Of a stretch of 64,000 nt of DNA, positions 1 through 35,998 are shown one piece after another. The translations under genes were made by a program, and so were the position numbers. Each line of letters begins with the position of its first letter. The first letter of the stretch is position 1. The notes under the pieces are model-generated. The model did not search any database, was not told where the DNA came from, and saw only the letters and a list, made by a program, of their open reading frames with translations. Location: NCBI GenBank assembly GCA_965202585.1, contig OZ241833.1, positions 44,392,001 to 44,456,000 on the forward strand. Reading direction: 5' to 3'. The DNA comes from Thalia democratica. Taxonomy: Eukaryota.

Positions 1-904
1 GTAGCCCGTTTGAAATTGTAAAAAGGTTTACTTGTTTTTTACAATTAAAAAATATACTTTTAGCCTTAATTTTTTTTTTTAGTTTCAAACACAGAGTTTG
101 ATTTCAGCACAACTAAAAATTGAACTTTTTTTTTTGTAAATCCTAAAGTAAAAACATTATACTAAGAGTTACAAAATTATTCAATATTTTTTTAAACTTT
201 TATTACTATTTAAAGATACTCCGGTCAGCAGTAGCTAATAACTTTACAATAACATGTTAATTACGTCAAAAAAAGTTTCTGTTGATGTTAAAAATAAACA
301 CAAATTCGCGATTACGCAGTTAGCTAGAATCGCGCTGGGCTTGGAACTAAATTTCGCACAAATCAAAGGGTTGCGGTTCATTAAAAAAGTATATCAACAA
401 AATTTTTAAACTAGGCCAAAAAGTGTTACTTAGTGAGAATAACTTTTGATTAAGTGTTGTTTTTGAACTAGTAAGTACCATTTTACTTAAAAAATTCCAA
501 TATAATCACTAAAGTTTTGTTTTACTTAGTTTATTGTATATAATAATGTTGTGTGAGGCTTTTGTGTTATGTTGTCGTATAACAATATTGTGTTTCTACT
601 TGAACATTTATATTATTTAATTATGTGTCAACCAACTGGGTTTAAACCTTAAAAAGTTCAATTCAGAGAGTTTTCAAAATCATTTTTAGACAACTACACC
701 ACCTTGCAATCTATTATTTTATCATAAAATGGTGTTTTAATATTTTTGTTTAAGTTCTTTTATTTTTGTATATATGTTGGCCACAAAATAGATTCATGAT
801 TTTTTGAAACTTTCAACTCAAAGAGATTTCAAAACCATTTGTAGAATCCCTGCACCATCAGGCAAACATTTATATAAAATTTAAAGGTATTTTAATTACA
901 TTTT

Positions 905-1580
905 ATAAGTCTAAACAGTTTTTTAATGAAATTTCAATTTTATAGATTAAATTACTTGAAAAAGTATATTTTTATTATAAGTAGATATATAAACGTAAAG
1001 AGTTTTAAATTTAAAAGAAAAATTTGTAAAAACTCAATTTATACTAACATTTTAATCAAAATTGAAATTCTCTTTAATTTTTATTAAAATGTTATGAACT
1101 TACAAATTGTACATCAAAATTCAAATCTGTTATTTAAAACAAAAATATTATAGACATAACTAACATACTCTATAAAAAATTAACTTTTTTATCAGAAAAC
1201 AATACTATAAAATAATAAAAACTAGAATAAATTTTTATAAAGATATTTTTTAATTTAATTGCATAAGTCTAAACATTTTTTAGTGAAATTTCAATTTTTA
1301 TAGATTAAATTACTTGAAAAAAAGAATTTACAATAAGTAGATACATAATTGTAAAGAGTTTAAAATTTAAAATAAAAATTTGTAAGAACTCCATCTATAC
1401 TAACATTTAATTCAAAATTTAAATTCTCTTTATAAAAATTTATTCTAGTTTTAATTAGTATAATACTGTTTACTGATAAAAAAGACTTTTTTTATAGAGT
1501 AAGTTAGTTATGTCTGTAATATTTTTGTTTTAGATAACAGATTTGAATTTAATATACAACTTGTAAGCTAATAACTTTTT
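905..1580. repeat. Combined direct and inverted repeat (A-B-A'-B reverse complement)
   Basis: About 905-1080 is repeated at about 1263-1430; about 1085-1240 is the reverse complement of about 1431-1580. Confidence 0.7.
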
Positions 1581-2526
1581 CCTGGTTCTTTTAGTTTCAA
1601 TTTATCTAAATTTAATACATTATAACAAATAAAAAATATAACGTTTTTCTACTACTATTTATATGTCTTTTTAAGCAGAAAAAAAAAGCATTTTAAACAC
1701 AGGGTTTTTCGGGTAAATATTGCGTACTTAAATGGCAGTGCATACCTAAGAAATGCGTACTTAAGCGGCAAATTAGAAACAAAAAAATATGTCTCTTTGA
1801 AAAAGTCTAGACAGGCCCCTGATTAAAACAACGCAAATCGAAACAAATCTATTGAGCTTGATTGTAGTTAAAAATTTACAAAACTTAAGTTTTTTCAACA
1901 CAGCGTTAAGGTTAGTATTAGTTGTTAATGACTAAAGTGCAGTATGTTGCTAGGCATTTTTGTCGCCTGCGTCTTTAAGAACCTTAAGTAGGTATACTAA
2001 GTGACTATTTGAGAAAAATTACCTTCTAAATTTCATAGATTTTTATAGTTTTCAAGATGTTAGTCTTGAAATTTTTACCATTAAAACACTGACTAAAATA
2101 TTAAATGTAAGGCTAGATTAGTATAAGAAGAGACTCAACTGTTTTTATGTAGTAACATAGCTATTAAAAAAAAAACAATATCTACAGACACGCACTTTGC
2201 CTAATAAATACATTTTTTGTTTATAAAATAGTCAGTTGCACTGAAAATCAAGTTATACAGACTTAAAGATCTGTTAATTACTTTATTTTTTGTTTCAATA
2301 ATAAATTGCATATTAATTACAATATTTTTTTAAAGGAAAATATAAACCATTGGTTTAAAAAAATGTTATAAAAATGTTTTATTATTTACCACTTTTTGAA
2401 ATATATACGAACAAACATTTCAAGCTGTCTAAAAATTTAAAATGTTTATTATAAAAACTATAAGCGTTTCAGCAGCCTTTATTGAAACTGTAAAACTTCA
2501 AACACAAAATACAATTAATACGAAAG

Positions 2527-2532
2527 TTTATT
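2527..2532 (-). terminator. Putative polyadenylation signal of the mucin-like gene
   Basis: AATAAA on the minus strand about 95 nt after the TAA stop (2628-2630). Confidence 0.55.
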
Positions 2533-2627
2533 CAAATAAATATATTTGTACGTATAGGCTCAAATAGTGCAAATGAAAAATGTAAGGAATGATTAGAAAA
2601 TGTGCAAAATAAGATTAATAAAAGTTT

Positions 2628-5600
2628 TTATTTGTTTTCAAACTCTTCAAGGGTCTCCAGTAGCTTTTCGTTCTGTAAAATAATTTAATTTGTTTAAATC
2701 TATGCATTACTCGAAATACCATTTACAAAATATTTAGTATTAACCGTAACTGTGACAAAAATAGTTGTTACAGTTAACACAAGGCTGTTTTCATATATTA
2801 AACCTTGTGAAATTTTTTTCTTAACTTATTTGAAAATCAATATAAAACTGATTTAAATTTTATTCAAACACACCTCATTTAGTAGCTTACTCTCGTCATT
2901 TTTAAGGTTTGATAAATTTTCAACAGTTTTGTCAACTACCGCCTTCATTTTACCTTCGGATTTGGTTGCTAGTTTTTCCATTGCATTCTGTATTTACGTT
3001 GTTTCATTAGATTATCTTTAGAGTAGTAATATTAGTGAGTAACACCTAACAGACATCAATATAAAATAGTTTTTTTTTAAGTAAGTTTTATATACTTTTT
3101 TTAAGTTCGATAGTTTTCATAACACAAACCTTGTTACATTGCTTGGTTTTTTGAGGAAAAAAAAGGGATATACTTATTTTTATTTAAATACCACTTTTGA
3201 GCATACATATCACAATGTTATGTTTTTAGCAATTAGTAAAGCTTAACCGATTTTTAAAGGCAGCTAGCTTTCTAATTGTCAGGTAATAAAGCTTTTTCTC
3301 GCATTTAAGTTCTTTCAACTTGTCTCACCTTAATTTTAGCAGCTTGTTTCTGCTCACCACTTATATCTCCTTCAACTTCTTCCTCGAGACTTTCCAGCAT
3401 CTCGTTTATGGAGTTCTGCAACTTCTCAGGGATCTCGTCTTCATCTGGGAGTTCCTTCAAACCAGCTTCAACGCTCTCTTTGAAGTTTTCATTTGAATCT
3501 AATTCCTGTGGTTGACAATTTAGGAATTAAATTGTTTCGTGTTTGTTGTGAAAGTTTTACCAAGCGAGAACTTTGTTTAATTTCAGTTACACCGTGTTTA
3601 AGATAAAAAAACAATTAAGTGTTTAAAAATTAAGTGTTTAAACAATTAAGTGTTTAAAAATTTGATGAAAAATACAGTTTAAGAATTTATGTGATTATAG
3701 CTAAAACAATGTATAATAAGATATTAATACAAATTATACACTTACAAATGATTCAACAAACCTGTTTAACTTTCTCATCGATGCTCTCAATCTCCTTTTC
3801 ATCTTCCAAATCACCTTCTTCAATCTCACCAATCAGATCGTTCACCCTCCTCTCGATATTGATCACCTCACTGCTTCCACCACTTGAGGAGCAGCAGAGC
3901 ACCCTCACCTCGTAGTCCTCGCACACGGGGTGGGTGGTCTGCTTGCTTCCCTCGCACAACAGACCCTGATCGGTGTCACAGCTCACCACCTGCCACTCCT
4001 TGTACTTTTCAAAGTCCTCCACGTTGCCTCCCACAGGCCTGCACTCGATGTCCACAGGGTTGGAACAGACCATGTCGCCCATGTGGGCGAAGGTCTCGTT
4101 GTCGTCCCTGTACGGTAATTTAGGAGTATCAGAGTCGATCCATGATGTCCACTCGCAAGTGATTGTGGTTGTTTCTGGCACGGTTGTGGTTGGTACTGTA
4201 GTTGCCGGTGTCGTGGTAGTTAGGTCGTGGGTTATGATTTCAGGGGTGGTAGTTGTCGGAGCTACGGTGGTTGTTGTAGCTTCTGTTGTAGTGGTGGATT
4301 TTGTAGTGGTAGTAGCTTCTGTAGTGGTTGTAGCTTCTGTCGTTGTAGTGGTTGCTTCTGTTGTAGTGGTCATATCTCCACTTCCGCTGCCAGACTCTTC
4401 TTCTTCAGTCGTGGTTGTTGGAGCCACAGTAGTTGTGGTTGCTTCGGAAATGGTTGTCACTTCTACGGTCGTGGTAGGAGCTTGCGTGGTAGTGGTGGCA
4501 ACTGTTGTTGTCGTCGCCTCTGTGGTAGTAGTCATATCTCCACTGCCGCTACCAGATTCCTCTTCAGTAGTTGTTTCAGCTACGGTAGTAGTCGTAGGAG
4601 CTGCAGTAGTAGTGGTCGCTTGAGTTGTTGTGGTCGCCACAGTAGTTGTTACGTCACCGCTACCTGACCCAGACTCTTCTTCTGTTGTTGTAGTTGCAGC
4701 CTCAGTAGTTGTCGTTGGGGCTGGTGTAGTAGTGGCAGCTATAGTAGTAGTTGTTGCCTCTGTAGTGGTAGTTGCTTCGGTTGTAGTTGTTACATCTCCA
4801 CTACCTGAACCAGACTCTTCTTCAGTGGTTGTAGTTGCTGCCTCTGTCGTGGTGGTTGCTTTGGGAGTGGTGGTAGTGTCCTCTACGGTTGTAGTTGTTG
4901 GTGCCACTGTAGTCGTAGTAGCCTCAGTTGTTGTAGTAACTACGTCTCCGCTGCCCGAACCTGACTCCTCTTCAGTTGTAGTTTCAGCCACGGTGGTGGT
5001 TGTAGGAACCACAGTTGTTGTGGTGGCTTCTGTAGTTGTGGTTGCTTGTGTAGTAGTTGTTGCCACGGGGGTCGTTGCTTCTCCGCTTCCGCTACCTGAT
5101 CCAGATTCCTCTTCCTCAGCAGTTGTAGTTTCAGCTACTGTTGTTGTAGTAGGAGCGGCGGTAGTTGTGGTTGCTTCTGTAGTGGTTGTCGTTTGAACAG
5201 TTGTAGTTGTCGGAGCTTCAGTCGTCTCTTCACCGCTACCTGAACCAGAACCGGATTCTTCCGCTTCTGTGGTCGTTGTAGGAGCAACTGTTGTAGTAGT
5301 TGCTTCTGGATTTGTAGTTGCTTCTACGGTTGTGGTCGTTGCTTGAGTAGTCGTAGTTGCTACTGGGGTAGTGACATCACCACTGCCAGAGCCGGATTCT
5401 TCTTCAGTTGTGGTAGTAGGAGCTACAGTAGTCGTAGTTTGAGCTTGAGTTGTTTCAGCTTCAGTACTAGTGGTAGCTTCTGTGGTTGTTGTTGCCACAG
5501 GAGTGGTTGCTTCTCCGCTTCCGCTACCTGAGCCAGACTCTTCTTCTTCAGTCGTAGTTTCAACTACGGTGGTTGTGGTTGGGGCTTCTGTGGTTGTCGT

Positions 5601-8600
5601 TGCTTCTGTAATAGTAGCTGTCGTTGTCGTAGGAGCTACAGTTGTTTCTTCACCGCTTCCACTACCAGACTCTTCTACCTCTGTAGTTGTAGTTTCAACT
5701 ACTGTTGTCGTTGTCGGTGCTACAGTGGTTGTAGTAGCTTCTGTTGTTGTTGCTTCACTTGTAGTTGTAGCAACTTCTCCACTACCACTTCCAGATTCTT
5801 CATCTTCAGTTGTTGTAGTTGGAGCAACAGTGGTCGTTGTTCTAACTGGGGTTGTTGTTTCTGCTTCTGTTGTGGTGGTAGCTTCTGTTGTGGTTGTAGC
5901 AACTTCTCCGCTACCAGAGCCGGATTCCTCTTCGGTGGTGGTCGTAGGGGCCTGGGTTGTTGTAGCGGCCACAGTAGTAGTTGTTGCCGCTTCTGTTGTG
6001 GTTGTTGCCTCTGTGGTAGTGGTCATATCTCCACTACCGCTTCCTGATTCTTCCTCTTCTGTAGTTGTCGTTGGTGCAACAGTCGTAGTTGTTGCTGCTT
6101 CAGTAGTAGTAGTTGATTCTGTAGTGGTAGTCATTTCACCGCTACCGCTTCCGGATTCTTCCTCAGTAGTCGGTGCTGGCGTGGTAGCCACTGTTGTGGT
6201 AACTTCCTCGGTGGTTGTTGTTACTGGAACTGTCGTAGTTGTTGTTGCCATTCCGGTTGTTGTTGTAGCTGCTTCTGTGGTGGTAACATCCCCGCTACCG
6301 CTACCAGATTCCTCCTCTTCTGTCGTGGTAGTTGGAGCTACAGTTGTCGTTGTCGGTGCTACAGTGGTTGTAGTAGCTTCTGTAGTTGTTGTTGCCTCTG
6401 TAGTTGTAGTAACTTCCCCACTTCCTGAACCAGATTCTTCTTCTTCAGTTGTAGTAGTTGGAGCTACAGTGGTCGTTGTTCTAACCGGGGTTGTTGTTTC
6501 TGCTTCTGTAGTCGTGGTAGCTTCTGTTGTGGTTGTAGCCTCTGTCGTAGTAACAACTTCTCCGCTACCCGAACCAGATTCCTCTTCCTCAGTCGTGGTT
6601 GTAGGCGCTACTGTAGTTGTGGTTTTAGCTTGGGTAGTCGTTGCTTTGACTGTGGTGGTAGTTGCCTCGGTTGTGGTAGTTGCCTCTCCGCTACCACTTC
6701 CAGATTCTTCTTCAGTTGTAGTCGTAGGTGCCTGAGCTGTTGTAGTTGCTGCAGTTGTTGTTGTTCTAACAGGAGTCGTGGTTTCAGCTTCTGTTGTGGT
6801 GGTAGCTACAGTTGTTGTCGTTGCTTCTGTAGTCGTAGTAGCTCTCGTTGTAGTTGTAACTACATCTCCGCTTCCTGAGCCAGATTCTTCTTCCTCAGTT
6901 GTCGTAGTTGGCGCCACAGTGGTTGTTGTTCTTTGAGCAGTTGTGGTTCTTACAGGAGTCGTCGTAGTAGCTACAGTTGTCGTAGTTTCGACTTTGGTTG
7001 TGGTAGTAGGAGCTTCAGTTGTCTCTTCACCGCTACCAGATCCCGACTCTTCCTCCTCTGTGGTAGTGGTTGGCGCCACAGTGGTAGTTGTTCTTACAGG
7101 AGTCGTAGTTTCTGCTTGAGTAGTTGTAGTCGTAGATGCCACAGTGGTCTCCTCTTCGCCTGAGCCCGATCCAGACATCTCTTCAGTGGTGGTTGTTGGA
7201 GCTGCAGTGGTAGTTGTCTGAACCACTGTTGTTGTGGTGGGAGCTTCGGTGGTGGTGGTGGTTTGTGGAGGCACTGTTGGAGGCTTGGGCACGTCGTCGT
7301 TGGTGCAAGTTGGTGTGCATCCGCAAGATAAGACGTCTTCGTACTCGTATAATACTTCAGTTCCGTTCCTGCACTTCAGAGATGCGTACTTGATGTCCAT
7401 GGAAGTCGGATTGCAGCAGGAACAACCTCCTTCGCCTTTAAAACAAAAAGTGTTTGAAATATCTTCCTTATATGGTTAAAAAAAGCAATAAAAAGAGTAT
7501 TTGAAAACTTTAATTACTCATATAAAGATATATGAACTTGAGTATCATAATGACATCATAAGAAAACGAATAAGTTTAAATATACAGATATTTTATAAAA
7601 AACCAAACACACTAACCTTCAAGCGGTGAGTATTTTCCCCTGCAAAAACCGTCACAGTACGAGTGAGCTACCGTGTTAGTCGAAACGCACTCATCCACGA
7701 CGAGGTACTCAAGCGTTACGTGACGCTGACACTCGAAGCACTCGTTGTACTGACACTTGAGGCAGCACCCGTCATCGCTGGTTATGACGTCACCGCCGTT
7801 CGTCACGCACGAGTCGGCATCGAACGGAGGGCACGGGTTCTTGAAGCAGGTCTCCTCGTGGAATCCTGAATCTTCCGAGTGGGAGTCTCCTGAGCAGTAA
7901 CAGGTGTGGCATGCGTCGGGGTTCCATGAAGAACCCGGCTGAAAATTGGTTGTTTATGAACCAATAATTGTTTTTATAGTATATAACAGAGTAAATTAAA
8001 GTAACGTTTGCTTAACTAAAGTTTACAATAAACGGTACTGCGGTTGTAAATAAAAGCAGCTAAAAAGGATAATATAAGATAATGTATGCCCATCAAATTG
8101 AAATATGTGTACAGAATTTATGGGCTTTTCACTTTATATTTCGAAAACAACTATATTTATGTCTATATACTTTAAAATAATTAGTACAATAGCATTACAA
8201 TAACTGCATGAATTCAGACTTGACGAAAAAAAATACAGTTGTAATCCAACTTACAGGTTTGGCCATTCCGTCGTCGCAACATACATCATCGGGGACGCAG
8301 CTCAGCACCGGGCAGCAACCCTCAACAGTTTCAACAAGCACGTGACAAGCGGGACACGTGGGAATGACGAGCGGTGGGCAGGTGTAGTTGGTGTGCACTA
8401 TGTGGGTTCCACCGGCACCAGGCTTGTTCTTGCACACGAAACCCAAGCACGTTTTCTCGTTCTCCCGACTTTCTCCTATCTGAGGTGTTACGTTTTAGTT
8501 ATAGTTAATATTTGCTAGTTATTATATTTAACAGTGTGTGAACCGCGGTACTAAAAAGTTTGAGGCAATTTTTTTATTTTCTTGTTGTACTTTTAGCTTT

Positions 8601-26600: not shown

Positions 26601-29600
26601 GTAATAGTGAATTTGTGACGTAACAGAGATAATTATTTTTGTTATTGTTGTGAGCTCTGGTTGGCTAAGTACGTGTCATTATCTGTTGTTACGTAATAAT
26701 GATCGATTAGTAGTAATTTATTATCTATGTTGTAAAGGTGATGCATATTGGTTATAAATGATAAGATGCAGGCAAGGATTAAAAAACTGGAACCTTCTCT
26801 TAGTTTAAATAATAAATAAAAAACGTCGATTTATATTTTATAGTTTAATTCATTAAAATGTACACAAATAATTTATTTTACTAGGCTATTATACTTTACT
26901 GTTTGAAAATTCAAGAATAAAATATTGAAAAATAAATTTAATTAGTTTTTGTCTAGTCACAATTCGGTGCTTTATAAGCACAATAAAAACCTAAAACTAA
27001 TTAAGTGTCGTAAAAACTATTTTATTACAAGATTATAAAAAGATATTTGTAGCATTAAACTTTCAATTCTCCTTGATTTTTAATATTATTTTAAAAGCGC
27101 AATAAAAACTTTACGACTTATTAAGCGTTCAATTTATGCCCAGGCAACGCTTGAAACTAAACTATTTTATCCTTTTAAATTTTAACAAAACTTTTGTTTT
27201 CTTTTTTAGATCAAAACTTTTATACTGTTATTAAATTTTTTAATAAGTAAACAAAATCAAATAACTATTTTGATAGACTTTAAAGTTATAGTTCATATAT
27301 TTTTAAATACATTATATTTAATATAATCTATATAAACGTAAAATATTATGAAATCCTAACCTATTAAGACAAATTTAATTGTAAAAGCTGAAGATTTAAA
27401 AGTTATAGTATCTTTAAAATCTTTTAAAAGTTTTAGTTAATCTAACTTTTAATTTTTACTAGGTACCAAAGTCAAGCAGAATTTTCAAACGTAGCACAAA
27501 AATTTGTAATTACTCAACATAGTATTGCTTTAAAAACTTTGAAAAAAACTTCTAAAAAAGTTATAGTTGTAAAAGCTGTTCATAGAACTAAAGTTTTGTA
27601 TTCATAACTAAAAACCAACATGTGCAAACAATATAATTTGCAAATGAATATTTTTTATTGATTTTTTAGTTTAAAACAAACTTGTAATTGTTCAGGAGTC
27701 AGTCCAGCACAGTAGTCTGGTGCATTCTCAGTTTTACAAGTAGGATTTTCAATATCTTCTACCTTCCAACTCTCAATAACCACTGCTGAGTCGTAGTTTG
27801 GTTCAGCTGTTTAAAAATAGATATGTTGTTGAAGGTTTTTTACAACAAGTATTTGTAAATCAAATTATTTTTAAATTAATTGAAGTTTTATAAGTATTAT
27901 ATTTTGATTTAAGTAAGTACTATTTCAAGTATTGCCATAATATACCTTAATGTTGTTTATCAATAGCTTACTATGCATTACAACTAAGTTTAAGGTAAAC
28001 TTTTTAATCTAATACTATGTTTGGACTTTAAACACTAAAAAATTTCAACTGGGCATTGTTTATTTTTCGTAATTTGTTCAAACACTTCAATTATTTTCTT
28101 AAAAATCATACTTATATACATAAATAACTAGTGTAAGTCAGCATATTATAAACAAATACAGTCTGTAGCTTTATCGTATTTTTAATTCCAAAATCTTCAA
28201 TATCATTGTGACGTCACAAACTTTCTCCTTTCGGCACGTAGTCGTCCTTCATGTTTCCGTTGAAGTTTCCGCAAACTCCGCACAAACCTCCCCTCAAACT
28301 CTCGTCGGTCACCTTGATCAGGAACGAGTCGAGTGTGACGTCGTAGTGGATCTGACCGTGTCGTGACGTGATCAGCGTGACGTCACTGAACTGCGGCTTC
28401 CAAACGCTGACGTCGAACTCGACGAAAGGTAATGCTCGTCTGTGACGTAAAATTTGATTCTTATGATGCAAGTTATGTCAGTAGTTTGTTTTGGTCTACA
28501 GTTAAATTTTGTTATATACAGTTTTTTTTTTTTGAAAATCATACAACATTATACTGCGTCAAAAAATTAGTTCAATTGTTTAAACTTTTATTATTATATC
28601 AATGAAGTCTTTGTGATCTGAAATTTGAAAATTATATATATATATATATATAGTATAGAATTTAAAGTACTTTACTAAAGTTTATTAGCTTGTTTTATTA
28701 AAACTTTCTTCATAAAAACTAAGTTATGTCAAGCTATTCAAATCAAAAAAGCAGCTGTCAATCAAAACATCTAACTTTTCATCGTTTACAAAAACTCCGT
28801 TCCTTCCGACACGGATCTCATTATCTCCCAGCATCAACTTCACCTCCGGACTCTCACCGTCGGGAAATCCCATACTGACCATAAAACTTCCCTCGCTGCA
28901 ATCCCCAGTTAATTGGTACTCGCACTTGCCATCATGCTCGAACCTTGCACCGTCGTAGCTGATCAGGGAATTTCCCTTCCACACGGCGCACACATCAGTG
29001 CCACCTTGCGGCCACGCGTCGATCACGTCTGTGATGCCATAGTTGAGTTAATATAAAAATTATGTTGTGACGTCATGATTAAATTAGTATGAAATTTTAA
29101 AGTGCTATAATACGGATGAATAAAAGCTTCTTGCAAATTATAAAAACCTCTGAAAATTTAACGCTGTTTTAGACGGCTTTGCTAAAGACAAATGCCGAAG
29201 TACTAACAAATGCATTCATTTCAAATTGGCTAAAAACTACACCACCGTATGTCAACTGCACTTTCGGTAAAAGGTATATAACCGAAATTATATAGTTTTA
29301 TAGACCAATGTGTTAGTTAGAATACTAAGAAACTAACGGTTTTGACACTGGTCTCCTTCGTACCCAACTGGACAAGAGCATTCGTCTTGAGCAACGCAAA
29401 CACCTCCGTTTTTGCATGATTTTGAACAAGTAACTGTAAAAATATAAACATAAGTTTAAGTAAAATGTATGTTTTCAAACTTCACGTTAACATTATACTT
29501 TTTTACCTCCGTTTTTACATGGTTTTGAACAAGTAACTGTAAAATTAATTTAAATAAATCAATGATAAAAAAACTTCCGATTTTATATGGTTTTTTGCAA

Positions 29601-32600
29601 GTAGCTATTAAAATCAATTTAAAATTAATTAATTTATACACAAATACCACCGTTTTTACATGGTTTTGTGCACGTCACTGCAAAAATAAGATTGTAATGT
29701 GTAATTTAAATTTTAACAAAAGAGTGCTTAATTAAAGAAAAAGCTCCATAGTTTTTGAGATGCTTTACAAATCTTTTTCTTTTCAAAATACATTTTAGTT
29801 GACATAAAAATAGGTGTAAAAAATATATGCACTTTTTAAATTAAACAGACTTAATATACAAAAACATAAATTTATGTTTAATATTTGTTTTCAAACTTCA
29901 CGTTTAACATTATACTTGTTAAAATTATCAAAAATTTATATTATAAAAGAAGACTTGATTAGTGGTTTTACCGTTTTTTTATAAGAATAATAACAATTTA
30001 CAAAAGTTTTGTATGTTAACTTATGTTATTTCAAATTTTAAAAAAATAGGTAATGAAATTTAAGCTTAGAAATAACATTAAAAAACAAACAGACTAAACA
30101 CACAAACACATAACTCACAAGAACAAGCATCATAATTTGCAGGTTTGTCACATTTTCCCTCGTACGGGTTGAACACCATTCCTGATTCGCACTTCCTGAG
30201 CTTAACTTTCAGGTCTGAGTCGCACTCGTGGTAGTGCTGGCAATCGTACGGGATCTCAATTACCTGACCCGATTCCTGACATTGCGCTGTTTGGAAAAAG
30301 TATTTAAAGTACTTAAAATTTTACTGATGTTATGCAACGTAGGCTTTTATTTTTAGTTTTCAACGCGTAAAATATGATTAAGGCAAAACTTTTCTTACAA
30401 TATTTTATAAGTTTATTAAAATAGCCTACAGTTATTGTGCTGTGAAACATATAAATGTAGTATTAGGTATAGAATGTAGATAAAAATTTTGAAAATGTGA
30501 AAGATTATCACTTCAATAAAAATAATTCGTGACTAAAATTGCGTGTAAGTATTAAAATTCCAAGTAAAGTGTTTTGTGCCGTCAGAAAAATACTTTGATA
30601 TTAATTAAATAAAATATTTTACTGAAGTTGTGAGAATTTTGTTTTGAAAGCTTAAAATGGTAAACCGCGAACAATTACATGAATTTATTTCACCGCTTTC
30701 TCCGAAACTGATAAGTTGCTTCGTCCGAGCAAAAGTTTAGTATTGATGTTGAGCTACAGCAAGGCTAACCACAAAGCTGATGTGAATTTTGATAAGCTTA
30801 ACGTATTGAATTGATTTAAATCCTTAATTCTCAAAAACCAAAATTTAAAAAGAAGTTAAAACTAACGTGTTTTTTGTTTGATGTGTTTTTGAAAACTTTA
30901 AATCCAAGTGAAACCGCTTTAACACATAAAATTGCAATTTGAACCGGTATTTCCATAAATTTAAATGCAAATCATACAATTTACAGTTTAGCAAAAAAAT
31001 TTAATAAAAATACTTTGCACATTTCGAAATACGGAATATATTTTTCAACAAAAGTAAGCAGTTACAAATAACAAGTAAATGTGGAAGCGGCATTAAATAT
31101 TTGCTTATTTTTTATTTGTCAACCGGGCGTACCCAGCTACAACACAATGAACTTGAAATATTTTCTAGATTTTTCTTACTTCTTAACACTGCAATACTTT
31201 GTGAATAAAATATTTTTCAACGTATTCTGACGGAGTTAAATGTTAAACACACGCGGAATTAAGTGTTCTATTGTATGAAGAATTTGTAAAATACATAGAA
31301 CTAAACTGCTTGAATGTAACTTTATTTTTACGCAGGTTTTATGTATGAACTCACCTACTTTACTAAGCATTAGTAAACAAAAACTTATTTTTGTACTTAA
31401 AATATTTTCTTTATATAAAAGCCTTATCAGTTTGTGCGCTTTAAACAAAAAAATCTTGTTATTAACCACAATTTACACAGAGTTATACTTAAATGTTAAG
31501 TAGCAATAAAATGGCAAAAAAGTAAGACTGTATACAAAAGAATATTCACGGGGTCTAGACCTGCTTGGTTTAAATTAATTTTTAACTTCATTCTTGTCGT
31601 TTTATAGTAACTTTAATTTGCGGTATTTTGTAGTTAAACCTTGTTCATTGTTTGCTTTAATTGGTTTTTGAACTTAAAAGTTCTTTCTGAATATAAAGCA
31701 CAATTTTAGATAACACTAAGTAATTAAAATTTATACAAGAATAATTCAACGCATGGAATTAAGTAAAAGTTAAAAAATATCAATCACAAACAACGAATCT
31801 ACCGAATCTACTTTGATAAAAAAGCGAATATTTATGATTGAAACATGTTTTAAAATTTCTAAAAAATGGTTTTGTTTTATAGTACTGAATAAAAAGTTTA
31901 ATTTCATAAAAAAACTCACAATCGCAAACGGCGAATCTTCCCTCGAACGATGATGTTTTTGAGCACCAAGAACCGTCAACAATACCGCCATCAGTGGTAC
32001 AGGTGTAGTACAGTTCACCGTTGAACTCGAATGGAAACACACACTCTGGTTGCCATGCTGGAATAGTTTGTTTTAGTTGGAAGTGTTTATAACTTTTATC
32101 TGCTGTACAAGCTGTTAATAGAATTATTTTTTTTATTACGTAACTATGCTGAATTGATAAGAACGAAAACTAGCGTTCTGATTTTCGTGCTAAAAAATTT
32201 TTAGGCCGGTTTTAATTTTTTCAGTTGTATTAGTGTTCTTTGTAAACTATAGATGCAGATTCAAAATAAAAAGTAACAGTATATAAAAATGTATGAACAG
32301 AGCGAGATTTTTGATGTAAAAGGGTGAATTCATCATAGCTTATACTAAAATATTGTTTAGCTCACAAAATTATTGGTTTAAAACTCTTATGCTTAATTCT
32401 TGAATCATTAATTATTTAAATTACGATAGGTTCAATTTAGTAAAAACAGTAAAATAAAATTTCCAAACTATTCTAAACAAAGAACTATTTCGGAACGTTT
32501 AAATAAAGTGAACTATAAAAATTTTAATCAAACATTGTTTATAAAGCTTTATTAATTTCAGCCGTTTAGTATTTTCAAGTAAAAAAACACTTTTTCACAA

Positions 32601-35600
32601 AACTTTTAAACCTTATTGAAGTTTTATTGTATATAACACCACACAGCAAGATTAAAATATATGTAAAAACTAACGAATTTGGCAGAAAGCTCCCTCGAAA
32701 CCGTGTGGACAGCTGCAAACCCCTGGTGTTGAACAAAAACCACCGTTTTCACAATCGTGCAGACAGAATGCTGTTAGAAAATATATATAATTATATTTTT
32801 TATTTTTGGTTTATGTTTAAAGTTTAAATAGTGAATATATACCACAATGTAGATAGACAACGTAAGTATAACCATTAAATACAATTAATTTCCAAAACGT
32901 TTTGACCTTGAAAGAAAAGCTTGTTGAACGTAAAAAAAACTTAAAGAAAAAGTTTATAAGTAAGCAGTTAGGCTGATAAAACAATACAAGTTTAAGAATA
33001 AAAGTTTTATTTTAATAGGTGTTCAAAATACAAACTGACCCATTTCGCAAATTTTTCCGAGGTATCCTTCTGGACACTCACATGTATCAGGACCAGTACA
33101 AACACCACCGTTCATACATTCAGTTGTGCAAATTGCTGTAATAAACATATAGAATATTTTTTAAAGTTGTAAACATTTGGTATATCTGATTACGATATTT
33201 AATATTTTAGGAAAGTTTTCCGTAAGCTGATTTAAAAGGAAACTTTGAGAGTAGATTGTAACCGTATGTTTAACATAACTACATGAGCATCAATGTTTAC
33301 ATACACTATATGTTTCATATAAATAATAAATAGTTATACATATATAAAAAAATACCAACCAATAGAACAATCTTCCCCACCATATCCATGATTACATGTA
33401 CAAGTATTTGGAGCTGAACAATGTCCATGCACACAGTTTTGCTTGCACTCGTCTGAAAAATGAGTGAGTAAATGTATTAACTAAATAAAATTTAAAAATC
33501 AACTAGCTATTTAATAAACTATTTTACTGTATTATATTTTTCTTAATTTTGTATAATAATTTTAGAAAGCATAACTAATGTTGTGATACTTATTCATGTT
33601 AAAAGACCTACATCAAATGCAAGCAAGCAACTTTTTAGAATATAAAAACCATATTAGATTTAAAATGTATACACTTTTTAATTCAGAAAATATATAAAAC
33701 AAACATTCATCGCAAGCATTGCCACTCCACCCATCCTCGCACTCACAAAAATAATAAATAATAACAAATAAATTTATATTAAAATATAATAAACAAACAA
33801 ACATTCATCGCAAGCGTTTCCACTTCATCCATCCTCGCATTCACAAAAATAATAAATAATAACAAATAAATTTATATTAAAATATAATAAACAAACAAAC
33901 ATTCATCGCAAGCGTTTCCGCTCCACCCATCCTCGCACTCACAAAAATCCCCCTCCACGCATTTCCCGTGCACCCCGCATCCGGGACTGCATGATGCCGA
34001 GTGGCTCTCGCTGTGCGTCTCGTTCTGAAACTGCGTCTGCCAGTGGACCTCCCCGTCGCCGATCTGAATTTGGGATGAGGATTGAGATCCGCCTGTGTGA
34101 AATAGTTTGTTTTTGGAGACTGTTTCTTAAAAAAACAAAAAAATTCAAAACAATTTGTTACCATACATTATAGCTTAATTTCACAACCATAAAAAACATT
34201 GGATTCTTCTTTTATATGTTGTCTCTTAAGTTTAAACAGTAAAGTTTAACAGTCTATTAATATCCACTGTAAAAATAAACATGTACTGTGGTTATAATAG
34301 CTCACCTCCGGACTGAGACTGATGTTGACCCTGTGATTGACTTCCGCCTCCGCCAACTTGAATCTGATGTTGACCTTGCCATGACCCGTCACCAACTTGT
34401 CCTTGCGACTGTTCAATTAAATATTAGAACTTTTTACAAGTTTTGGACAGATTCAATTAACACTGGTAGCATAAAGTATAAAAACCTCGGTATTTTGTAA
34501 AAACTTCTAAATACTTAGTTTTAATAGTCGAGTCTACATTTAAACAATTTTTAAAACACTTTAAAAGAACATAAATTGAACATGAAGTTTTTTATTAAAA
34601 AAATATTGTTACCTGATGCTGTCCTTGCCATGAGCCGTCCCCGATCTGAATCTGTCCCTGGCTCTGCGACTGACCGCCGTTGCCAGCAACTTGACCCTGG
34701 CTTTGGTGTTGTCCTTGCCAACTGCCTCCACCTACTTGAACCTGATGTTGTCCCTGCCAACTTCCTTCTCCTCCTACCTGAACCTGTCCCTGATGCTGTC
34801 CTTCCCATCCTCCCGTGCCGATCTGTGCCTGGCTCTGGTGTTGTCCTTGCCACGAGCCTCCTCCGACTTGGACCTGTCCTTGGTTTTGGCTCTGGGACTG
34901 TCCCTGCCAGTTGAGACCCCCTGAAATCTGGTGGCCGCCCAAGTTCATCTCCCCGTTCACTCCCTGGTCCATGTCGAAGTTCCAGCCGAACTTGTGACCG
35001 GATGAAGAACTTGAAGAGGAACTAGAGCTAGAAGAATGTGAGGATCCTGAAGAGTGAGACGAAGAACTGCTGCTTGAATGAGAGCTTGAGGAGTGGGAGC
35101 TTCCGGAACTGCTGGAGTGTGACGAGGAACTCGAGCTGCTGGAGCTTGAAGAATGGGAACTTCCGGAACTGCTGGAGTGTGACGAGGAACTCGAGCTCGA
35201 GTGGGAACTGGACCCTGACACCGAGCCGGAGTGGGAACTGGATCCGGATGAGGAGCTGGAGTGTGAGCTTCCGGAAGAAGATGCGTGTCCGGAAGAAGAA
35301 GAACCTCCGGTCATTCCCCAGCTGCCTTGCACCTGCGCCTGGTGTTGAGAAGATCCTCCGATGCTTCCTTGAACTTGAGCCTGGTGCTGGCTCGAACCTC
35401 CCCAAGATCCCTGCACTTGTGCTTGGTGCTGTGAGGATCCGCTGTATGAGCTTCCTTGATGTTGAGCTTGTACCTGATGTTGGTTATCGTCTCCTCCGTA
35501 GTAAGAATAGTCGTGCGAGTTTCCGTTGCTGTAATCCCACAAACTTCCTCCGAGGTTCGAGAAGTCACTGTGTAAATTTATAAGAAATATAGATAAATTA

Positions 35601-35998
35601 TAACAAGTTTTATAACAGTAAAATGTTTTGAAAGAAGATTTTATTTAGGTATCTAGCACTTTATTACCTCGACCATTTCTTTTCGATTCTTTCTTTGTTT
35701 TCTTCCGCTTTCTTTTTTAGGTTGCCTGATGTTTTATTAATTTTAGCAATAGTATTTTAAAATAACAAAAAAAAAAAACTTACATAAAACAAACAAGAAC
35801 TTTTCGAATAAAAGTTAAATTAAACCTTTTTAAACTTTAACAAACGTAGCAAAGAAGATGCTTTATTGTAAAAAGTAATATTTAGTATAAAAGGCTCGTA
35901 TGTTTAATAATAATTTAATTCTAAAAAAAATATTTTAAGTAAAACTAACCACTTGTAGCCACTACAAGGGCCAATAAAAATAAAACTTTTTTGTCCAT
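2628..35998 (-). CDS. Giant secreted VWF/gel-forming mucin-family protein (~4,490 aa, 54 coding exons): SP-LCR-EGF4-FN2-CBM14-EGF-VWD1/2/3-short PTS-VWD4-VWC array-CTCK-Thr-rich/SG domain-CysD-acidic tail
   Basis: Exons reconstructed by hand with GT-AG ends and consistent phases (5' to 3'): 35950-35998, 35668-35725, 34613-35567, 34306-34408, 33901-34092, 33360-33452, 33040-33135, 32675-32770, 31920-32057, 30119-30286, 29338-29433, 28776-29028, 28222-28439, 27682-27806, 26302-26524, 25784-26018, 23556-23739, 23075-23240, 22671-22771, 22318-22446, 21877-22043, 21503-21621, 21045-21276, 20505-20707, 19956-20170, 19532-19693, 19118-19258, 18690-18830, 18223-18456, 17557-17785, 17067-17269, 16548-16761, 16155-16288, 15778-15885, 15315-15522, 14849-15036, 14341-14500, 13750-13958, 13279-13465, 12789-13013, 12410-12546, 11982-12191, 11477-11701, 10926-11147, 10329-10509, 9800-10021, 9415-9551, 8821-9045, 8255-8479, 7617-7938, 3762-7435, 3329-3505, 2874-2987, 2628-2672. 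Starts [17 protein letters not shown] (signal peptide), ends ...[11 protein letters not shown]. Motifs [23 protein letters not shown], CxGxC...CSCC and WxxW are typical of MUC2/MUC5/VWF relatives. Confidence 0.92.
3612..3660. repeat. Short intronic tandem repeat (AATTAAGTGTTTAAA x3)
   Basis: Read directly. Confidence 0.8.
3891..4157 (-). other. CysD (WxxW) mucin domain
   Basis: [10 protein letters not shown]...ETF...[11 protein letters not shown]...[12 protein letters not shown]...[11 protein letters not shown] matches the CysD consensus. Confidence 0.9.
4158..7304 (-). repeat. ~1,050-aa Thr-rich (PTS-type) domain with 21 acidic SGSGSG motifs
   Basis: Read directly in ORF 3753-7400: degenerate TTTT(E/V/A)A repeats punctuated every ~40-55 aa by E(2-4)SGSGSG(SG)(E/D). 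Confidence 0.95.
7305..7731 (-). other. C-terminal-type cystine knot (CTCK), located internally
   Basis: [40 protein letters not shown]|[43 protein letters not shown]: 11 Cys in the MUC2/VWF CK pattern, split by intron 7436-7616. Confidence 0.88.
7760..13465 (-). repeat. VWC-like Cys-rich array built from a duplicated ~6-exon cassette
   Basis: Exons 13279-13465/12789-13013/12410-12546/11982-12191/11477-11701/10926-11147 pair with 10329-10509/9800-10021/9415-9551/8821-9045/8255-8479/5' part of 7617-7938 by phase, size and sequence (e.g. VCNYD...[17 protein letters not shown](E/Q)ETDCCPEY; VPDDVCC). Confidence 0.85.
13750..16761 (-). other. VWD4-C8-TIL assembly
   Basis: [16 protein letters not shown]...EGLCGVCNN, C8 ([14 protein letters not shown]...[10 protein letters not shown]), TIL ([10 protein letters not shown]...GCFCPEG). 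Confidence 0.88.
17557..20170 (-). other. VWD3-C8-TIL assembly with MUC2/VWF-type dimerisation cysteines
   Basis: [14 protein letters not shown]...GLCGDFDG; [18 protein letters not shown]...[15 protein letters not shown]...CSWKYEPCG closely parallels the MUC2 D3 C8/TIL region. Confidence 0.9.
20505..23739 (-). other. VWD2-C8-TIL-TIL' assembly
   Basis: [14 protein letters not shown]...[11 protein letters not shown]8 ([13 protein letters not shown]...NWRNATVC), and two TIL-like modules. Confidence 0.88.
25784..29028 (-). other. VWD1-C8-TIL assembly
   Basis: [14 protein letters not shown]...[11 protein letters not shown] (VWD, no GDPH), C8 ([13 protein letters not shown]...WRSDEFC), TIL ([18 protein letters not shown]...GCFCPDG). 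Confidence 0.85.
29338..29433 (-). other. Fifth EGF-like domain exon
   Basis: [30 protein letters not shown], phase 1-1. Confidence 0.85.
30119..30286 (-). other. Chitin-binding peritrophin-A (CBM14/ChtBD2) domain exon
   Basis: [54 protein letters not shown]: six Cys spaced x12-x5-x10-x12-x8, with a G(M/L)VFNP motif. Not in the ORF track (too short). Confidence 0.8.
31920..32057 (-). other. Fibronectin type II domain exon
   Basis: [40 protein letters not shown] matches the FN2 consensus CxFPFxYxGxxYxxCT...WC...C. Confidence 0.85.
32675..34005 (-). other. Four EGF-like domains (one per exon)
   Basis: [28 protein letters not shown]; [27 protein letters not shown]; [28 protein letters not shown]; [28 protein letters not shown]. 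All exons are phase 1-1. Confidence 0.88.
33697..33950. repeat. 98-bp tandem triplication spanning an exon 3' end and donor
   Basis: ACATTCATCGCAAGC recurs at 33703, 33801 and 33899. Confidence 0.9.
34010..35567 (-). other. N-terminal Gln/Gly/Ser/His/Trp low-complexity region of the mucin-like protein
   Basis: ORF 34595-35542 plus exons 34306-34408 and the start of 33901-34092: QHQAQVQGS(W/I)GGSS x3, a long S/H/G tract, and GSWQGQHQ repeats, all in frame with the signal peptide exons. Confidence 0.85.

Follow-up and report, generated by a model that had tools for sequence, protein, structure and literature searches.

The 64,000-nucleotide stretch analyzed here (contig OZ241833.1, positions 44,392,001 to 44,456,000; hereafter the window) is AT-rich eukaryotic DNA whose minus strand carries a gene with the domains of a gel-forming mucin. 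Ahead of the first von Willebrand D assembly (D1), seven exons form a cassette encoding five EGF modules, one fibronectin type II (FN2) domain and one CBM14 (peritrophin-A) domain. Our results make it likely that the cassette codes for the conserved head at the N-terminus of a gel-forming mucin from a tunicate, of the Ci-GFM1 type, joined in frame to D1. In the order of transcription, the cassette and the exon that follows it are:

33901..34092, minus strand: end of a Q/S-rich low-complexity sequence plus EGF1; 192 nt, phase 1-1, six Cys; Pfam EGF_2 24.2 bits (cut-off 22.1)
33360..33452, minus strand: EGF2; 93 nt, phase 1-1; Pfam EGF_PEAR1L 38.2 bits (cut-off 37.5)
33040..33135, minus strand: EGF3; 96 nt, phase 1-1; Pfam EGF 21.6 bits (cut-off 21.5)
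32675..32770, minus strand: EGF4; 96 nt, phase 1-1; Pfam EGF_2 24.8 bits
32058..32111, minus strand: possible 5′ part of the FN2 exon; 54 nt, exonic only with the upstream in-frame acceptor
31920..32057, minus strand: FN2, preferred short form; 138 nt, phase 1-1, four Cys, GC 48%; Pfam fn2 (PF00040) 46.3 bits (cut-off 22.2)
30119..30286, minus strand: CBM14 (peritrophin-A); 168 nt, phase 1-1, six Cys; Pfam CBM_14 (PF01607) 41.4 bits (cut-off 22.1)
29338..29433, minus strand: EGF5; 96 nt, phase 1-1; Pfam EGF_2 25.4 bits
28776..29028, minus strand: first exon of the D1 VWD domain (VWD1), entered in phase 1 from EGF5, with splice sites present; Pfam VWD 35.6 bits

All seven cassette exons have lengths divisible by three and are in phase 1 at both ends. 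Their acceptors are pyrimidine-rich and end in CAG, their donors begin with GT (GTRAGT-like, or GTTGGT/GTTTGT), and their GC content is 41-59%, compared to 22-30% in the introns. Each EGF exon clears at least one EGF-family cut-off in Pfam. No plus-strand open reading frame of 70 or more amino acids overlaps the cassette region. Short-read contigs from two DNA runs, the only sequencing runs found to contain the region, span it, and several of the listed pieces are identical to the window; across these contigs the introns are evenly covered and exon-exon joints are absent.

A first-pass annotation of this DNA had called the EGFs, the FN2, the six-Cys CBM14 and the VWD, and had placed one module per phase-1 exon ahead of D1. 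The Pfam scan upheld the domain calls, and the splice sites and 1-1 phases agreed with the layout. Its count of seven symmetric exons stands, but EGF1 is encoded together with the Q/S-rich tail in a single exon rather than in one of its own. The surplus cysteines that end the FN2 and CBM14 open frames come from reading past GT donors, and the spliced forms have four and six Cys, respectively.

The CBM14 assignment is supported by both sequence and predicted structure. The exon covers all 53 positions of the Pfam model (53/53) and, when spliced, has the cysteine pattern C-12-C-5-C-10-C-12-C-8-C. This six-Cys spacing, with aromatic residues between the second and third Cys and after the fourth, matches the family consensus. 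Sequence matches in the PDB were EHEP, squid beak chitin-binding protein 3, the carbohydrate-binding modules of chitinases, and tachycitin. An AlphaFold 2 (AF2) model of the domain had a mean pLDDT of 88.2. When this model was compared to the PDB with Foldseek, its 13 best matches were all of the CBM14 fold, with query-normalized TM-scores (TMq) of 0.59-0.80 and E-values that, owing to the small size of the domain, were only ~1e-2. These matches included Aplysia EHEP (the top match), Der p 23, tachycitin, chitin-bound Avr4, the CBM14 of human chitotriosidase (CHIT1), and Blo t 12.

The FN2 domain matched PDB entries over its whole length, namely the modules of MMP9, MMP2 and fibronectin that bind gelatin, and also PDC-109. 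Its hydrophobic ligand pocket retains the aromatic positions (FPF, Y, W, F/Y) of the MMP9, MMP2 and fibronectin modules. The AF2 model of this domain, built from three sequences only, was poor (pLDDT 54).

Two acceptors, both in frame and separated by 54 nt, are available to the FN2 exon, giving exon starts at 32111 and 32057. In favor of 32111, the upstream acceptor (AACAG) resembles the other acceptors of the gene. However, a start at 32111 adds 18 residues that include one unpaired Cys, the GC content of 32058-32111 is intron-like (31.5%), and the segment is missing from the FN2 exons of two relatives described below, which are 138 nt long. Based on the shared 138-nt length, the intron-like GC and the unpaired Cys, the exon probably begins at 32057.

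None of the five EGFs (0/5) contains the calcium-binding consensus (D/N-x-D/N-E/Q-C), and the best Pfam models for these modules were EGF_2, Teneurin, PEAR1L and hEGF. The cassette EGFs are short, non-calcium-binding repeats of the tenascin/teneurin type.

Upstream of the cassette, a signal-peptide exon (35998-35946) is followed by ~375 amino acids of Q/G/S/H/W-rich low-complexity sequence. The signal-peptide exon joins 35567 in frame only through a phase-2 donor (TA/GTTTTA) at 35946, and use of the donor at 35950, which looks stronger, would destroy the frame at the 35567 acceptor. Downstream, minus-strand open frames from 29047 to ~7300 encode VWD/C8/TIL assemblies four times over (D1, D2, D′D3, and D4 with D4N), VWC repeats, and a cystine knot (CK). 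A central Pro/Thr/Ser-rich (PTS) segment of ~45 amino acids lies between D′D3 and D4N-VWD4-C8-TIL, and a long PTS/SG tail follows the cystine knot.

We searched the region from D1 to D′ (29100-19800) for furin-type sites and found only two R-x-K/R-R matches, which were either off-frame or ahead of an acceptor. Since no genuine furin-type site was found in the D1-to-D′ exons scanned, the mature protein would be expected to retain the head, in the manner of mucins and not of the VWF propeptide.

Because the EGF5-VWD1 join is predicted from genomic DNA, we considered whether the cassette could belong to another gene lying upstream, or to a short isoform that stops after EGF5, and thus lie outside the mucin polypeptide. 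Such a product would consist of the signal peptide, the low-complexity domain, EGFs, FN2, CBM14 and a final EGF. Read-through of the EGF5 donor does reach a stop after two codons, as this explanation would have it. However, the 309-bp gap to VWD1 lacks a start codon with a signal peptide, and EGF5 exits, and VWD1 enters, in phase 1. Moreover, the cassette adjoins VWD1 in one relative and TIL-D′D3 in another (see below), and in Ciona a single chain with proteomic support unites FN, a chitin-binding domain (CBD) and D1-D4 (Nakashima et al., 2018; PMC6109156). We therefore regard a separate gene or isoform as very unlikely.

To find relatives of the mucin gene, we carried out an exhaustive search with its single-copy D4N exon, which returned three exon-sized fragments that led to three contigs. 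Two are from ENA assemblies: ctg11571l of ERZ22157276 (L003/L004) and ctg10752 of ERZ25067576 (L002). The third is scaffold_82959 of TARA_SAMEA2656981 (L001). From D1 through the last VWC, the exons of L003/L004 and those of the window gene are collinear, and in L004 the order is EGFx3-FN2-CBM14-EGF-VWD1-C8-TIL-VWD2. Backbone exons of the window gene are collinear with L002 as well. In L002, EGFx3-FN2-CBM14-EGF is followed by an SG-rich linker (~4434-4568) and TIL-D′D3 (within 900-6300), with no room for the VWD/C8 parts of D1 and D2.

The FN2 and CBM14 domains of the two relatives that contain the cassette exceeded the Pfam cut-offs (49.9 and 48.1 bits for FN2; 40.5 and 35.3 bits for CBM14). 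Candidate splice sites define phase 1-1 exons of 138 nt (FN2), 174 nt (CBM14), and 96 or 99 nt (EGF). As in the window gene, each module occupies one phase 1-1 exon, the EGFs-FN2-CBM14-EGF order is kept, and all cysteines are present. The relatives differ from the window gene in having three rather than four EGFs before FN2, and L002 differs further in lacking the VWD/C8 parts of D1 and D2. The leading EGFs differ in number and type while the FN2-CBM14-EGF core is constant, and relationships among individual EGF domains across species are ambiguous.

Identity to the window was 49% and 42% for FN2 and 35% and 36% for CBM14 in the two relatives. The alignments have N-terminal gaps of at most two residues, and every Cys is invariant across the three species. 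Also conserved in all three are the Y/F positions of CBM14, and F7, P8, F9, Y16 and W30 of FN2 are invariant. Between L002 and L004, amino-acid identity was 60-72% and dN was 0.16-0.37; because dS is saturated, a dN/dS ratio cannot be quoted. As amino-acid identity remains at 60-72% despite saturated synonymous sites, the cassette has been under long-standing purifying selection.

The first-pass annotation had attributed the cassette to exon shuffling. Read as a recent, lineage-specific event that made a new architecture in this animal, this explanation fits the symmetric 1-1 phases of all cassette exons, the EGF count (four here, three in the relatives) and the exon-fragment echoes in two introns described at the end. 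However, two distant relatives share the FN2-CBM14-EGF core and its intron phases at 35-49% identity with saturated synonymous sites, and the same parts occur in Ciona (PMC6109156), which largely refutes a lineage-specific event. Recent shuffling is the least probable of the explanations we considered, and we give it almost no weight. Since the same order and intron phases are found in two relatives, and the same parts in Ciona, the cassette is an old, conserved part of the mucin family.

The D4N search also returned two long, unrelated proteins; neither had a Pfam mucin domain in its first 700 residues, and the only match of one was to a beta-propeller repeat. Word-based searches with the FN2 open frame and with the FN2 and CBM14 alignments, run under a length filter and a three-word rule, yielded no candidates, a result that is no evidence of absence. 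Two metagenome loci recovered by scanning with the FN2 alignment contained FN2 and no other part of the cassette, and were set aside. The remaining contig, L001, is a 1.7-kb Tara Oceans plankton contig that covers the D4 region only. It is 48-89% identical to the window (mostly 62-89%), and its introns are only ~50 bp, which suggests a closer relative with a compact genome.

The annotators of the first pass did not recognize the combination of CBM14, FN2 and EGF, but a counterpart has been described. Nakashima et al. (2018; PMC6109156) purified the chitin-nanofiber envelope membrane of the Ciona gut and examined it by proteomics. The third most abundant membrane protein was Ci-GFM1 (KH.L108.38, Ciona intestinalis type A), a 2880-residue protein whose 30 domains fall into 13 types (PMC6109156). 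Its backbone consists of D1, D2, D′D3, a 50-amino-acid central PTS, D4, VWC and CK, and it contains a fibronectin type II domain (figure legend) and exactly one chitin-binding domain (supplementary table) (PMC6109156). A 2021 review again gives the function of Ci-GFM1 as unknown. Our literature search found no paper other than this one by Nakashima et al. that describes the combination. Lang et al. (2016) mention neither chitin nor EGF and are silent on the architecture of the Ciona proteins. With FN2 and one CBM14 in Ci-GFM1, and the same module order in two relatives, novelty of the combination is not supported.

The window gene resembles Ci-GFM1 in its backbone, its short central PTS and, as predicted from genomic exon order and phases, its FN2 with a single CBM14. 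It differs in its ~375-amino-acid low-complexity N-terminus, its large PTS/SG tail after the cystine knot, and its four EGFs before FN2. Vertebrate MUC2, MUC5 and VWF share the polymerizing scaffold (D1-D2-D′D3...D4-VWC-CK), but are not known to have any module N-terminal to D1, or a CBM14 or FN2. The mucins of insect and arthropod peritrophic matrices (peritrophins, IIM) are likewise secreted and tie a mucin-like glycoprotein to gut chitin through CBM14. However, these proteins carry multiple CBM14 domains with PTS sequence, and are not known to have a VWD/C8/TIL/CK polymerizing scaffold, FN2 or EGF.

The head likely anchors mucin polymers to chitin fibrils. Ci-GFM1 has been proposed to line the chitin nanofibers of the gut envelope membrane (PMC6109156), and chitin anchoring by the head is a reasonable prediction, the same as that made for Ci-GFM1. 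Several points weigh against this reading. Chitin binding by any GFM1 is so far a prediction (PMC6109156). Orthology to Ci-GFM1 is proposed from architecture, through the parts list and the backbone. The joins between the exons, EGF5-VWD1 and the inclusion of the CBM14 exon among them, are predicted from phase and conservation and from the protein known in Ciona. Among solved structures, the closest by sequence to the CBM14 is Aplysia EHEP, a polyphenol-binding protein, and CBM14 domains have been reported to bind hyaluronan and N-glycans too (PMC6109156). Lastly, one paper states that salp fecal pellets have no chitinous membrane, which is relevant if this animal is a salp.

Some of these points raise another explanation, in which CBM14 and FN2 bind something other than endogenous chitin, such as polyphenols from algal food, other glycans, the fibrils of cellulose or the surfaces of particles. 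On this view the head would serve to capture food or particles, or to protect, and would not anchor the mucin to chitin. EHEP is the top match in the PDB by both sequence and fold, and the reported recognition of hyaluronan and N-glycans, the salp pellets and the presence of cellulose fibers as well as chitin in Ciona membranes (PMC6109156) all fit this idea. However, the six cysteines of the CBM14 keep the canonical spacing, and its aromatic positions are kept too, as in chitin-binding peritrophin-A domains, and its top fold matches also include tachycitin, chitin-bound Avr4 and the CBM14 of chitotriosidase. In addition, Ci-GFM1 was recovered from purified chitinous membranes (PMC6109156), and the genome analyzed here contains a chitin synthase gene. 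We consider a different ligand to be unlikely, although it is the strongest of the alternatives.

The chitin synthase gene, which is of the metazoan type and has multiple exons, lies at 49.10-49.12 Mb of C5 (G000:C5:49100500-49118000). One exon scored 34.4 bits against a Chitin_synth_2 cut-off of 27, and the gene shows recognizable EDR, QRRR(W) and SWGTRE motifs. Family scans of the whole 802-Mb assembly yielded 31 CBM14 and 32 FN2 matches, and only the mucin locus has both within kilobases. The VWD1 exon is single-copy in the genome. A GH6 family search intended as a tunicate marker gave no match and carries no weight; the tunicate assignment is made from the resemblance to Ci-GFM1. A dense array at G000:C2:59325700-59336400 has at least 20 CBM14 matches, 11 of them in one 803-amino-acid open frame. 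This array looks like a peritrophin-like gene with multiple CBM14 domains, a type said to typify insect peritrophic matrices.

A model for chitin anchoring by the head is as follows. Each mucin monomer would supply one CBM14 chitin-binding site and one FN2 site, and the polymer would become multivalent as monomers are linked via D3 and the cystine knot. The multivalent polymer could then cover chitin nanofibrils produced by the chitin synthase of the animal itself, or link them to one another, giving a chitin mesh embedded in a mucin gel, as proposed for the gut envelope membrane of Ciona. FN2, with its pocket aromatic residues retained, would probably bind a second ligand. Since L002 keeps the cassette even though D1-D2 is gone, we infer that the head acts once the polymer is mature, rather than in packaging that depends on D1-D2.

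If this model holds, the Ciona model of a chitin mesh in gel-forming mucin would extend to another, reportedly pelagic, tunicate lineage. Irrespective of ligand, the comparisons above show the EGF-FN2-CBM14-EGF head to be a conserved part of the mucin family that is under selection and has fixed intron phases. It offers a well-defined fragment for a chitin-binding test, and does not reveal a new kind of protein.

FN2 and CBM14 are always adjacent, and both are kept in L002. A speculative possibility, which we think improbable, is that the pair forms a two-site fiber lectin for a chitin-cellulose mesh, or binds chitin together with a protein ligand. If a two-site fiber lectin were correct, FN2 would gain a role in binding carbohydrate or fibers that is not known from vertebrates, and the mixed chitin-cellulose mesh would be that of tunicate gut or filter membranes.

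Two introns in and around the cassette contain partial copies of neighboring exons. At 33697-33948, a unit made up of the EGF1 exon's 3′ end, the donor behind it and the start of the intron occurs 2.6 times, with a period of 98 and a 94% match. An in-frame TGA is present in the second copy, and the third is intact; both of these additional copies are intronic and lack an acceptor. At 29493-29689, in the intron between CBM14 and EGF5, the EGF5 acceptor together with the first ~35 nt of its exon recurs in three degenerate copies (61-100% identity), which could serve as decoy acceptors.

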